Shown here: piece after piece, positions 34,755-62,914 of the stretch
Layout: each line of letters starts with the position of its first letter
How positions within the stretch are numbered: the stretch's first letter is position 1
NCBI RefSeq assembly: GCF_006345805.1
Contig: NC_043020.1
Location: forward strand, 9,238,001-9,302,000
Direction of reading: 5' to 3'
DNA: 64,000 nucleotides
From: Octopus sinensis
Taxonomy: Eukaryota
Made by a program: the position numbers and the translations under genes
The notes under the pieces: generated by a model
What the model saw: only the letters and a program-made list of their open reading frames with translations
What the model was told of the DNA's origin: nothing
The model's database searches: none

Positions 34755-35078
34755 ATGCGTGTGCTGAACCGCCTGTCCTCCCTCGTGCTCATCATCTTAG
34801 TTGCGAGCGTCCTTCTGATTCTAATGAACGTGGTCGTGCTGCACAAGATCTGGCAGGAACAGGTCAATTTGAGGGAAGGACCTATGAAGATGCTGTTGGC
34901 ACCAGCACCACCAATCGATGACATCAACCTGAACATCGACAGCAAGAATGACGTCAACCCCAATATTAACGGCGATGCTAAAATTGACAGTCCTCAAAGA
35001 CAAATTGTGGCAAATCTTCCGTTGAACCCCATCACCAATGTGAAATCGGGGCCAACCCTTTGGATTCATGCAAAGCAG
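34755..35078 (+). CDS. ttll-15: Coding exon 1: MRVLNR, hydrophobic signal-anchor, P/D/N-rich stem, ending TLWIHAKQ
   Basis: Acceptor tttcag ends at 34729, ATG at 34755, donor CAG|gtaaag at 35079. 108 codons, phase 0. The acceptor upstream of the ATG implies an unlocated 5' UTR exon. Confidence 0.85.
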
Positions 35079-62000: not shown

Positions 62001-62914
62001 GCATCCAGCCATAGAAACCTATTTCTTTACTACCCACAAGGGGCTAAACACAGAGGGGATAAACAAGGACAGACAAACGGATTAAGTCAATTATATCGAC
62101 CCCAGAGCGTAACTGGTACTTATTTAATCGACCCCGAAAGGATGAATGGCAAAGTCGACCTTGGCAGAATTTGAACCCAGAACATAGTAGCAGACGAAAT
62201 ACCACTAAGCATTTCGCCCGGCGTGCTAGCGATTCTGCCAGCTCACAGCCATAGAAACCATACCAAATCAGACTGGAATCTGGTACAGGTCTCTGGTTTA
62301 GCAGTTCCAGTCAAACCATCCAACCATTGCCAGAATGGAAAGCAGTTGCTAAATGATGACGACTACCTACCAAATTCATCCGCAAAGCTTTGGTTGGCGC
62401 AGCGCTATCATAGAGGACACTTGACCAATGTGTCACATTTTTTTTTCTAATCATCATCATCATCATCGCTTAACGTCCGTTCTCCATGCTAGCATGGGTG
62501 GGACGGTTCGACCGGGGATCTGAGAAGCCAGAAGGCTGCACCAAGCTCCAGTCTTATCTGGCAGTGTTTCTACAGCTGGATGCCCTTCCTAATGCCAACC
62601 ACTCCGTGAGTGTAGTGGGTGCTTTTACATGCCACCTGCACAGGTGCCAGGCGAGGCTGGCAACGGCCACGGTCGGATTGGTGTATTTTATGTGCCACCG
62701 GCACGGAAGCCAGTCAAGGCGGCGCTGGCATCGGCAATATTAATTTTAATTGCTTTTCTTTTAATTAAACCAACTAATGAATCTGTACCTCTTTGTCTTG
62801 TTCTTCTGCAGAGTCCTCGATGACGACAACATGGAGGTGTCTGATGCAGACATCAATGTGTTCAGTGACCGATGTATGGCGCCAGAATGTAAATCATCAA
62901 ATTGTACATTATGG
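34755..62914 (+). CDS. ttll-15: Multi-exon gene (12 coding exons in window, 3' end outside): membrane-anchored tubulin-tyrosine-ligase-like (TTL/TTLL ATP-grasp) protein, ttll-15-like
   Basis: Exons 34755-35078, 40527-40682, 42423-42542, 46269-46344, 48276-48345, 49658-49741, 51916-52000, 53590-53668, 58196-58304, 59302-59368, 60884-61011 and 62812-62914 join into a stop-free 1401-nt frame with AG/GT boundaries and matching phases. TTL-type motifs: [42 protein letters not shown] and YLMEANMSPNL. The symbol comes from recognising these motifs, not from a database search. Confidence 0.88.
36997..37312 (+). mobile_element. Short 3' copy of the same CR1 family in intron 1
   Basis: Near-identical to the reverse complement of 5005-5320, including the (ATT)n tail. 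Confidence 0.9.
37680..38410 (-). mobile_element. Two adjacent older family B-related SINEs
   Basis: Homology to the 863-1246 body and head at 37680-38055 and 38094-38410. Confidence 0.75.
38638..38683 (+). ncRNA. Minimal (dimer-type) type I hammerhead-like motif in intron 1, sense strand
   Basis: AACAC-CTGATGA-A-GGCTG-(10 nt)-CAGCC-GAAA-TGT-T-GTGTT. Confidence 0.62.
39726..40295 (+). mobile_element. RTE-clade LINE 3' fragment with (TGA)n tail
   Basis: Open frame containing [22 protein letters not shown] and MMDREVWR, then stop and TGA repeats. Confidence 0.88.
40527..40682 (+). CDS. ttll-15: Coding exon 2: [13 protein letters not shown]...[11 protein letters not shown]...MKPGQK
   Basis: tttcag|CTG...AAG|gtaagc, 156 nt, phase 0-0. 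Confidence 0.9.
41134..41167 (-). ncRNA. Minimal hammerhead-like motif with A3-U8 core
   Basis: GAGTC-ATGATTA-GC-aaa-GT-GAAA-CCGG-T-C-GACTC. Mirror copy on the + strand at 41330-41361. Confidence 0.55.
41992..42335 (+). mobile_element. tRNA-derived SINE, B-related subfamily (another copy at about 35595-35905)
   Basis: TGGCTCAGTGG and CTCGAATCC boxes, shared CTTGAGCAAGxCACTTTATTTCAC core. Confidence 0.75.
42423..42542 (+). CDS. ttll-15: Coding exon 3: [17 protein letters not shown]...KTKFQNY
   Basis: aacag|GTC...TAT|gtgagt, 120 nt. The VNHFPG..ITxK motif is typical of TTLL proteins. Confidence 0.9.
42700..43270. repeat. (ACC)n tract with a repeated higher-order block
   Basis: The block containing CTCCACTAA...CAGCTATAACCACTATC recurs three times. 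Confidence 0.85.
44468..45600 (+). mobile_element. Decayed L1/Tx1-type LINE 3' end (C-terminal CCHC zinc motif, 3' UTR, AATAAA)
   Basis: ALPVWDKL...[18 protein letters not shown] at about 44800-44898. In-frame stop at 44776 and a frameshift near 45058. Confidence 0.72.
45395..45466 (+). tRNA. tRNA-Pro(TGG) copy with mismatches at positions 1 and 39; probably a retro-copy or SINE head
   Basis: (T)GCTCGTTGGTCTAGGGGTATGATTCTCGCTTTGGGTACGAGAGGTCCCGGGTTCGAATCCCGGACGAGCCC matches the conserved eukaryotic tRNA-Pro. Anticodon TGG at 45427-45429. T1 replaces G1 and A39 breaks the C31-G39 pair. TTTTT at 45472-45476. Confidence 0.85.
46269..46344 (+). CDS. ttll-15: Coding exon 4: [25 protein letters not shown]
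   Basis: ttgtag|ATA...G|gtgatt, 76 nt, phase 0-1. Confidence 0.9.
46985..47418 (+). repeat. RTE 3'-tail repeat with 63-bp array; inverted paralogue of 30705-31102
   Basis: Same unit sequence and variant order. Related copies at about 185-510, 41520-41800, 44050-44465, 52595-52780 and 62455-62740. Confidence 0.85.
47723..48108 (-). mobile_element. SINE family B
   Basis: Perfect 12-bp TSD ACTGGAATATAT at 47711-47722 and 48109-48120. Confidence 0.88.
48276..48345 (+). CDS. ttll-15: Coding exon 5: [23 protein letters not shown]
   Basis: tttcag|AG...CA|gtgagt, 70 nt, phase 1-2. Confidence 0.92.
48878..49506. mobile_element. hAT-like MITE interrupted by a SINE
   Basis: Ends CAATTGGTTCTCAACC / GATTGAGAACCCCTG. 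8-bp TSD AGTTAGAC / AATTAGAC. Confidence 0.7.
49086..49478 (+). mobile_element. SINE family A in intron 5
   Basis: Full-length, nested in a hAT-like MITE. Confidence 0.88.
49658..49741 (+). CDS. ttll-15: Coding exon 6: [28 protein letters not shown]
   Basis: ttccag|T...AG|gtaaat, 84 nt, phase 2-2. Confidence 0.92.
49790..51287. mobile_element. hAT-like MITE interrupted by the Tc1 element
   Basis: Ends CAGTGGTTCCCC / GGGAACCATTG. 8-bp TSD TTGTAAGG / TTTTAAGG. Confidence 0.72.
49905..51181 (-). mobile_element. Full-length decayed Tc1 element with 29-bp TIRs; transposase pseudogene 49957-50992
   Basis: TIR CAGGGGTTGGACAAAATAATGGAAACACC at 51153-51181; the left copy at 49905-49933 has 2 mismatches. 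TA flanks. Motifs [40 protein letters not shown] and PTPY*. Confidence 0.93.
51916..52000 (+). CDS. ttll-15: Coding exon 7: [29 protein letters not shown]
   Basis: tttcag|G...AAG|gtaggc, 85 nt, phase 2-0. Confidence 0.92.
53067..53363. repeat. 147-bp tandem duplication
   Basis: Copies start at 53067 and 53214 and are nearly identical. Confidence 0.9.
53590..53668 (+). CDS. ttll-15: Coding exon 8: [26 protein letters not shown]
   Basis: ttccag|ATA...G|gtaaca, 79 nt, phase 0-1. Confidence 0.88.
53718..53989. mobile_element. Solo LTR (272 bp)
   Basis: TGTGGTGT...ACACCACA termini, 5-bp TSD CACAT. Confidence 0.82.
54296..54680 (-). mobile_element. SINE family A in intron 8
   Basis: Full-length reverse copy. 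Older or partial copies also at about 17263, 29540, 31676, 33507, 40907 and 61370. Confidence 0.85.
55461..55731. mobile_element. Solo LTR (271 bp), same family
   Basis: TGTAGTGT...ACACCACA termini, 5-bp TSD GTTTG. Homologous to 53718-53989. Confidence 0.82.
55793..55985 (-). mobile_element. Family C SINE-like element
   Basis: Perfect 17-bp TSD ATTATGCCAATATTATT at 55776-55792 and 55986-56002. Confidence 0.82.
56014..56600 (+). mobile_element. Family C element with a triplicated body of about 184 bp
   Basis: Units start near 56064, 56247 and 56432 behind a single head. Confidence 0.82.
57340..57770 (-). mobile_element. RTE LINE 3' fragment plus shared tail
   Basis: [12 protein letters not shown]...WDEVVK followed by the same tail family. 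Confidence 0.7.
58196..58304 (+). CDS. ttll-15: Coding exon 9: [36 protein letters not shown]
   Basis: attcag|GG...AG|gtttgg, 109 nt, phase 1-2. Confidence 0.88.
58804..59177 (+). mobile_element. Non-autonomous Helitron
   Basis: Starts TC after A and ends CTAG before T, with a subterminal CCCG...CTGGG hairpin at 59150-59165. No TSD. Confidence 0.8.
59302..59368 (+). CDS. ttll-15: Coding exon 10: [23 protein letters not shown]
   Basis: ttccag|A...GAG|gtaagt, 67 nt, phase 2-0. Carries the ATP-grasp metal-binding D and E. Confidence 0.93.
59963..60189 (-). mobile_element. Family C element
   Basis: 19-bp direct repeat GCGTAATTATATCATACCT at 59944-59962 and 60190-60208. Confidence 0.82.
60528..60792. 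repeat. 128-bp tandem duplication
   Basis: TGGACAGG recurs at 60528, 60656 and 60784. Confidence 0.9.
60884..61011 (+). CDS. ttll-15: Coding exon 11: [32 protein letters not shown]...FPN
   Basis: ttccag|GCC...AT|gtgagt, 128 nt, phase 0-2. Completes the E-x-N motif. Confidence 0.92.
61677..61829. mobile_element. Tc1-like MITE
   Basis: Imperfect TIRs CAGTCATGGCCAAAAGTTTGGAAC / GCTCCAGATTTTTGGCCACAACTG. Confidence 0.55.
62020..62245 (-). mobile_element. Family C element nested in an RTE-tail repeat
   Basis: 14-bp TSD CAGCCATAGAAACC at 62006-62019 and 62246-62259. Other family C copies at about 27746, 29950, 34464, 43627, 45630-46215, 51290 and 57180. Confidence 0.82.
62812..62914 (+). CDS. 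ttll-15: Coding exon 12: [35 protein letters not shown]
   Basis: ctgcag|A...TGG|gtgagt, 103 nt, phase 2-0. No stop codon, so the gene continues beyond the window. Confidence 0.85.

Follow-up and report, generated by a model that had tools for sequence, protein, structure and literature searches.

A predicted type II signal-anchor in the TTLL15 branch within the tubulin tyrosine ligase-like family, described from a locus of Octopus sinensis

Introduction

To our knowledge, tubulin tyrosine ligase-like (TTLL) proteins are at present all interpreted as tubulin-code enzymes that act in the cytosol or in cilia. The locus described here raises the question whether one branch of this family faces the lumen of the secretory pathway instead. 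It lies within a stretch of 64,000 nucleotides of the Octopus sinensis genome (RefSeq assembly GCF_006345805.1, contig NC_043020.1, positions 9,238,001 to 9,302,000 of the forward strand), which as a whole is called the window in the following and to which all coordinates refer. An earlier reading made from the letters of the window (the sequence-only reading) had placed a TTL-like ligase gene at 34755-62914 and proposed a type II signal-anchor and a luminal catalytic domain for its product. We identified the gene as TTLL15. The encoded protein is XP_029650724.1 (P0230), named "probable tubulin polyglutamylase ttll-15 isoform X2" in RefSeq and comprising 565 amino acids. The gene cannot count as new, because gene and family are already annotated. 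New in comparison with the literature searched appears to be that, judged by its sequences, an entire ancient TTLL clade has the build of a type II secretory-pathway enzyme and is devoid of the tubulin-binding part. We consider it rather probable that TTLL15 is a type II-anchored luminal amino-acid ligase acting on a substrate other than tubulin.

N-terminal anchor and stem of the octopus protein

The product starting at the ATG at 34755 begins with a basic N-terminus (R2 and R6), followed by the 23 hydrophobic residues L7-L29; both elements had been recognized in the sequence-only reading and are borne out here. In a Hessa scan L7-L29 is the sole strongly hydrophobic stretch of octopus TTLL15. 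Its best 19-residue window has a Hessa sum of -4.06 and a Kyte-Doolittle (KD) value of 3.2, and everything else in the protein lies at or above +5.0. The flank on the N-terminal side of the segment carries a charge of +5, the flank on the C-terminal side a charge of 0. For structure prediction the full RefSeq protein was submitted to AlphaFold2 together with 52 orthologues, resulting in a mean predicted local distance difference test (pLDDT) score of 84.3. The anchor is predicted to be helical with a pLDDT of about 96, and a confident helix spans residues 22-68 of isoform X2. The adjoining stem (residues 30-108 of the product starting at 34755) is rich in N, I, P and D and is predicted to be disordered or flexible, with pLDDT values below 50 at X2 residues 63-70 and 74-115. 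Its low-complexity character had been noted before; its length, then given as about 70 amino acids, is 79. A first homology search with the anchor exon and the following exon yielded only two metagenomic fragments, one of which (P0001) has a conserved anchor.

In the family alignment we also observed a conserved motif, L-N-[IV]-Y-E-L-[HR]-[KR]-M-x-E-x-H, at the luminal end of the anchor and in the juxtamembrane part (residues 41-57 of P0230, window about 34815-34865). Its Asn45 is conserved to at least 90%, the motif has diverged in octopus, and the helix predicted by AlphaFold2 extends through it. The motif could serve oligomerisation, retention or cleavage.

Conservation of the anchor in the TTLL15 family

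A profile search over 1.84 billion representative proteins gave 277 matches below 1e-30. Many of them are full-length proteins of about 500-540 amino acids terminating exactly at the C-terminal WC of the profile. In 30 of 38 full-length representatives the N-terminal part contains a 19-residue window whose Hessa sum does not exceed 2.5; the catalytic parts never fall below 4.96. An N-terminal hydrophobic segment was also found in 51 of the 52 named orthologues, the lone exception being a plainly truncated model. These orthologues cover a sponge (Sycon), cnidarians, molluscs, an annelid, nemerteans, a brachiopod, a priapulid, arthropods, nematodes, echinoderms, hemichordates, amphioxus and a sawshark, and the lamprey orthologues in the representative set likewise have the anchor. 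The best named matches are ttll-15 across phyla, which identifies the family as TTLL15. The N-terminal tail has a median length of 29 amino acids in the orthologues and frequently contains dibasic motifs; the stem has a median length of 39 amino acids (range 26-80). The anchored type II layout thus appears, by sequence comparison, to be a trait of the whole family and not a special feature of the octopus gene.

As to the distribution of the family, lampreys and a sawshark have TTLL15 orthologues, and a marine protist transcriptome (MMETSP) contains TTLL15-like sequences. A direct orthologue is absent in mouse (PMC5051658).

We next consider the orientation of the anchor. According to the positive-inside rule the more positive flank of a membrane segment stays in the cytosol. 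Averaged over the 51 orthologues with a segment, the net charge is +3.0 for the 15 residues before it and -0.2 for the 15 residues after it. The N-terminal flank is the more positive one in 48 of these proteins, the flanks are equal in two, and in one the order is reversed. From this excess of charge the positive-inside rule predicts that the tail stays in the cytosol and the C-terminal domain is translocated, i.e. a type II signal-anchor. The segment is single and N-terminal, and it is too long for a cleaved signal peptide. In N-out anchors such as those of cytochrome P450s, as well as in anchors of the outer mitochondrial membrane, the positive charges follow the helix; the observed charge pattern argues against both types. 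One representative from metagenome or transcriptome data (P0051) has an N-terminus resembling a cleavable signal peptide in place of the anchor, which would likewise send the domain into the lumen.

These data bear on two other placements of the protein. TTLL15 might be a membrane-tethered glutamylase facing the cytosol (N-out/C-in, hairpin or monotopic) on the Golgi, the endoplasmic reticulum (ER) or vesicles, where it would modify tubulin or other cytosolic proteins locally and bind zinc through its C-terminal cysteine module. The opposite flank charges in 48 of 51 orthologues and the N-terminus of P0051 speak against this arrangement. Alternatively, the basic N-terminus and the single hydrophobic segment behind it could be read as a bipartite mitochondrial presequence with a stop-transfer signal, so that the protein would be anchored in the inner membrane with its catalytic domain in the intermembrane space, a compartment that is generally known to permit disulfides and to contain adenosine triphosphate (ATP). 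However, the tails often contain acidic residues and prolines, an amphipathic helix is not predicted, and the cysteine spacing is neither twin Cx3C nor Cx9C. We regard a mitochondrial location as highly improbable, the least probable of the alternatives considered.

Catalytic domain

The ATP-grasp TTL-like domain named in the sequence-only reading is clearly present. Pfam TTL (PF03133) matches residues 156-420 with E=1.3e-49 and 169.5 bits (cutoff 20.1), and the outcome was the same with full-length P0230. Among solved structures a sequence search of the PDB found TTLL6 as the best relative (E=1.5e-27), followed by TTLL7 (2.1e-21). In the AlphaFold2 model the catalytic domain is confident from residue 121 onwards. 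Foldseek again placed TTLL6 first (E=7.8e-23, template modelling (TM) score 0.70-0.73 on the target) and then TTLL7, TTLL11 and TTL; the structurally aligned TTLL6 chains are only about 21-23% identical to it. The motifs WVQK, HRG, FVQEY, RFDFVLD and MEANMSPN align with the nucleotide and metal sites of TTLL6, are intact in octopus and are invariant in the 52 orthologues. From this alignment the Lys of WVQK and the Arg of HRG are taken to be ATP-binding residues, and the acidic residues encoded by the exon at 59302..59368 are taken to be Mg2+/ATP ligands. Since all ATP and Mg2+ motifs are intact and invariant, the octopus protein looks like an active ligase by prediction.

The C-terminal cysteine module

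The cysteine-rich segment reported by the sequence-only reading was located in the last exon inside the window (62812-62914). It represents the start of a larger module. The 52 orthologues share nine invariant cysteines, one in the catalytic "RFC" and eight in the final 100 residues or so, and a tenth cysteine is present in 48% of them. All eight C-terminal cysteines are found in 201 of the 215 family sequences covering the module, which ends with W-x-G-K-C-x6-WC. In octopus the first three are encoded inside the window and the other five belong to the part of the RefSeq protein encoded beyond it. AlphaFold2 predicts a helical module with a pLDDT of 90-96. Its net charge has a median of 0 in the 52 orthologues (range -7 to +7); being neutral, it is not a cationic microtubule-binding domain (cMTBD) of the TTLL6/7 type. 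A cMTBD located C-terminal to the core, as in the autonomous polyglutamylases of the TTLL4/5/6/7/11/13 type, was not found in TTLL15, which also argues against a glutamylase facing the cytosol.

Searches for relatives of the module were negative. No Pfam family was detected even at E-values up to 10. A profile comparison with PDB sequences returned only odorant-binding proteins at E=0.16, a likeness that we dismissed as chance. For P0025, modelled with AlphaFold2 and then compared by Foldseek, nothing was found below an E-value of about 1.

We then reviewed how cysteines are lost within the family. Cys484 and Cys495 are jointly lost in two divergent sequences, and two other cysteines are jointly lost in a tick protein. 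Loss by pairs is the behaviour of disulfide partners, whereas for zinc sites one would expect four cysteines to vanish at once, and it thereby counts against a zinc-binding module on the cytosolic side. The pattern suggests disulfides, with the reservation that the sample is small and the total number of invariant cysteines is odd.

Gene model and isoforms

Fragments of related proteins were aligned to the window by tblastn and the splice borders were then read. In this way we obtained 12 exons with AG/GT borders on the + strand between 34755 and 62914, which form one stop-free frame of 467 codons (Table 1). Together with an upstream exon these codons correspond to residues 1-487 of XP_029650724.1. 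Because a GT donor at 62915 closes the last of these exons, the gene runs on beyond the window, and the final 78 codons (with five of the eight C-terminal cysteines) are encoded past its end. Thus the ATG and the in-window exons of the originally proposed span are real, whereas 62914 does not mark the end of the gene. The proposed start holds for one isoform: the ATG at 34755 is an internal ATG of the common exon and starts isoform X3, whereas X1 and X2 start upstream at 21929 and 29363. By splicing into 34730 these two acquire a longer basic tail than X3. The N-terminus of XP_036368574.1 is identical to the X1 exon at 27 of 27 positions (tblastn; GT donor at 22009). The X2 exon is conserved with O. 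bimaculoides (MTSIKDLQKALA), and its joined product is P0230.

Table 1. Features of the window assigned to the TTLL15 gene, and remnants or candidate remnants of mobile elements.
Feature	Position	Strand	Evidence or remark
Alternative 5' coding exon of isoform X1 (MSHDQSEF...FLSC + 2 nucleotides)	21929..22008	+	ATG 21929; spliced to 34730
Alternative 5' coding exon of isoform X2 (MTNIKDLEKAL + GC)	29363..29397	+	ATG 29363; donor gtatgt 29398; spliced to 34730
Common exon: basic juxtamembrane tail (IRQIKRPK), ATG 34755, anchor, stem	34730..35078	+	AG acceptor 34728-29; GT donor 35079
Predicted signal-anchor / transmembrane helix, L7-L29, 23 residues	34773..34841	+	hydrophobicity, AlphaFold2, orthologues
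Juxtamembrane helix and N/I/P/D-rich low-complexity stem, ending in conserved PTLWIHAKQ	34842..35078	+	composition, pLDDT
Exon, N-terminal part of TTL catalytic region (LESGYLKHV...KPGQK)	40527..40682	+	tblastn with orthologues, splice sites, frame
TTL exon	42423..42542	+	tblastn, splice sites, frame
Exon with motif aligning to TTLL6 yicKp / aRGrgi	46269..46344	+	tblastn, splice sites; K, H and R unchanged across the 52 orthologues
TTL exon	48276..48345	+	tblastn, splice sites, frame
TTL exon	49658..49741	+	tblastn, splice sites, frame
Exon with the family-invariant Cys of 'RFC'	51916..52000	+	tblastn, splice sites; Cys invariant in orthologues
TTL exon	53590..53668	+	tblastn, splice sites, frame
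Exon lacking a counterpart in O. bimaculoides models	58196..58304	+	tblastn, splice sites, frame
Exon with acidic residues aligning to TTLL6 fEilgFDillD / llE	59302..59368	+	tblastn, alignment; D and E invariant in 52 orthologues
Exon ANMSPNLSS..., from Asn of the E-x-N motif to the TTL domain end	60884..61011	+	tblastn, Pfam, TTLL6 alignment
Exon, start of C-terminal 8-Cys module (first 3 of 8 Cys)	62812..62914	+	splice sites; GT donor 62915
Non-LTR (long terminal repeat) retrotransposon remnant, open reading frame of 474 amino acids	5173-7364	-	RVT_1 E=1.4e-27; adjoins a 248-amino-acid frame with a weak endonuclease-reverse transcriptase match
Open reading frame of 235 amino acids resembling a retroelement tail	39562-40269	+	weak sub-threshold DUF6451 match; in the intron after the anchor exon
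Decayed Tc1/mariner-type transposase over two open reading frames	50003-50843	-	HTH_Tnp_Tc3_2 E=1.3e-11; DDE_3 E=4.2e-13

The exon at 58196-58304 has no match in two protein models of O. bimaculoides (P0178, XP_014776666.1, and P0060, A0A0L8ICW7), which read intron sequence instead. Since the exon aligns well with orthologues of other phyla, both O. bimaculoides models are probably mis-annotated.

All three RefSeq isoforms splice into or begin in the exon with the hydrophobic segment, and the anchor is therefore kept in each of them. The sequence-only reading had itself named a dominant first exon lacking the anchor as the finding that would count against it; one O. vulgaris GenBank model (CAI9740271.1, P0321, 502 amino acids) begins at a Met right after the anchor. 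This model is what would be expected if the functional product arose from an internal start behind the helix or by proteolysis on the cytosolic side, giving a soluble TTLL enzyme acting on tubulin, with the anchor being regulatory or a by-product of annotation. Helix and charge pattern are, however, kept across phyla, unlike sequence that is not used, and Met44 is not conserved as a start. Furthermore, an oyster-like bivalve contig assembled from RNA sequencing data (Logan SRR11482947, 2077 nucleotides) holds an intron-free reading frame of 529 codons that includes the anchor and whose ATG has an in-frame stop upstream of it, which means that anchored transcripts exist. An anchor-less functional product consequently seems very improbable to us.

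Name and literature

Studies in C. elegans group ttll-15 with the tubulin glutamylases (PMC5051658, PMC11216746, PMC7252309). Staining with GT335 was nevertheless normal in ttll-15 mutants, and a cMTBD was not found in TTLL-15 (PMC5051658). Likewise, axonal glutamylation was not lowered when deletions of ttll-15 and ttll-9 were added to a triple mutant (PMC11216746), and TTLL-15's specificity has never been put to test (PMC7252309). The missing tubulin glutamylation defect of the mutants (PMC5051658, PMC11216746) is a further point against a cytosol-facing glutamylase. The N-terminal anchor is unmentioned in these C. elegans papers. Our literature search combining TTLL or tubulin tyrosine ligase with anchor, transmembrane, lumen, secretory pathway, type II membrane or signal peptide returned nothing relevant. 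An automatic flag on the transmembrane segment of TTLL15 may well exist in sequence databases.

Database names of the family members conflict, ranging from "polyglutamylase ttll-15" and "monoglycylase TTLL15" to "TTLL4-like" and "TTLL6", which indicates that all of them are homology transfers. This concerns the names "tubulin polyglutamylase" and "tubulin monoglycylase" across hundreds of animal genomes, which are purely homology-derived. For the octopus gene the label "tubulin polyglutamylase", resting as it does on homology alone, is probably wrong. The doubt expressed about it in the sequence-only reading was thus justified, given the homology-only name, the absence of a cMTBD and the normal tubulin glutamylation in C. 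elegans.

A possible luminal ligase

Taking the layout of TTLL15 as a type II protein, the following course of events can be proposed. The N-terminal helix would act as an uncleaved signal-anchor and insert at the ER in type II orientation, leaving the tail in the cytosol. Stem, ligase domain and cysteine module would then enter the lumen of the ER, the Golgi or the post-Golgi pathway, where the C-terminal cysteines would be disulfide-bonded; exposure at the cell surface after transport, or shedding via cleavage of the stem, would be alternatives. Luminal ATP would serve to form an acyl-phosphate on a carboxylate of the substrate, onto which an amino acid would be ligated. Glutamate is the likeliest amino acid to be added because of the closeness to TTLL6/7/5, with glycine as a possibility. 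As substrate one would expect a protein that is luminal, secreted or membrane-bound, or else a different carboxylate, with tubulin out of reach. Golgi residence in particular is a guess, as ER, post-Golgi compartments and cell surface are equally open, and the "secreted proteins or glycans" put forward as substrates by the sequence-only reading are speculation.

Several points weigh against a luminal ligase. Topology and localisation of TTLL15 are predictions from sequence rules; of the earlier interpretation, the type II layout (anchor in 51 of 52, charges in 48 of 51 orthologues) holds, while the luminal orientation has the standing of a prediction. The number of invariant cysteines is odd, and a single cysteine is missing from one nematode fragment. 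Moreover, with their C-x2-C-x2-C spacing the eight cysteines might be ligands of two Zn2+ in the cytosol instead. Conserved N-glycosylation sequons lie only inside a catalytic motif in the 52 orthologues, and as the same sequon motif is present in cytosolic TTLL6, they are uninformative on topology. To these points the anchor-less O. vulgaris model has to be added. We know of no ATP-grasp ligase working in the secretory lumen of animals, and the proposed reaction would require a luminal supply of free glutamate or glycine.

The odd cysteine number, the spacing fitting metal binding and the lack of informative conserved glycosylation sites would all suit the tethered, cytosol-facing glutamylase introduced above, as would the fact that the nearest relatives are tubulin glutamylases. 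Weighed against flank charges, paired cysteine loss, the missing cMTBD, the signal-peptide-like N-terminus of P0051 and the C. elegans mutants, we consider it unlikely.

A further possibility accepts the luminal position and questions the reaction. TTLL15 might attach an amino acid to the uronic or sialic acid of a glycan, to a lipid or to a metabolite, or it might be a non-catalytic binding protein. TTLL15 has no known substrate, it carries other sequence in place of the tubulin-binding parts of TTLL6/7, and the C-terminal module has neither a Pfam family nor a solved relative by sequence or fold, all of which would be compatible with such a role. The invariance of all catalytic motifs argues against a pseudoenzyme, and the characterised TTL and TTLL enzymes are generally known to act on protein carboxylates. 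We regard this variant as improbable.

Returning to the luminal protein ligase, its most specific form would make TTLL15 the first amino-acid ligase of the ATP-grasp type in the secretory pathway of animals, a conserved luminal or ecto-enzyme by which secreted or membrane proteins receive Glu (or Gly) as branches or tails. We see this as a real possibility, but would stop somewhat short of calling it probable. If true, it would define a class of extracellular protein modification reaching from sponges to lampreys and sharks, with mouse having no direct orthologue, and would give the enzyme family of the "tubulin code" a non-cytoskeletal branch. A luminal domain would by itself render existing TTLL15 annotations wrong and would explain the absent tubulin phenotypes of C. 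elegans ttll-15 mutants. It would also make ATP-dependent amino-acid ligation in the secretory pathway or outside the cell testable in C. elegans and insects, and would raise the question why mouse does without a direct orthologue.

Repeats and mobile elements in the window

The window is animal DNA with abundant microsatellites, copies resembling short interspersed nuclear elements (SINEs) and transposon remnants. The introns of the gene and the region upstream of it are full of long microsatellite and low-complexity tracts and tRNA-like SINE copies. Long microsatellite or SINE intervals, for example at 35100-36100, 1571-2224, 19105-20095, 25486-26301 and 42747-43339, yield many spurious long open reading frames. 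The Tc1/mariner-type remnant listed in Table 1 sits in the intron between the exons at 49658-49741 and 51916-52000.

Comparison with known enzymes

TTLL15 can be compared with three groups of proteins. With the autonomous tubulin polyglutamylases TTLL6 and TTLL7 (PDB 6VZQ-6VZW, 8U3Z, 4YLR) it has the ATP-grasp TTL core and the ATP and Mg2+ motifs in common. Membrane anchor and stem, in contrast, are found only on the TTLL15 side, and the cMTBD of TTLL6 and TTLL7 is replaced by the neutral, helical module with eight cysteines. C. elegans TTLL-15 belongs to the same named family, of which it is the only member studied genetically, and is the source of the RefSeq name of the octopus protein. The full-length nematode orthologues P0042, P0048 and P0271 have an N-terminal hydrophobic segment as in octopus TTLL15.

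In its general architecture TTLL15 resembles enzymes of the secretory pathway such as FICD/HYPE, FAM20C, TPST and glycosyltransferases. Like these it combines a short basic tail carrying dibasic motifs with a single N-terminal signal-anchor, a flexible stem and, towards the C-terminus, a globular catalytic domain in which cysteines are conserved. For ATP-dependent modification of proteins inside the lumen there is a precedent in FICD/HYPE and in Golgi kinases such as FAM20C, which are ATP-using luminal enzymes. Fold and chemistry are nevertheless unrelated to those of all these enzymes, TTLL15 being by prediction an ATP-grasp amino-acid ligase.

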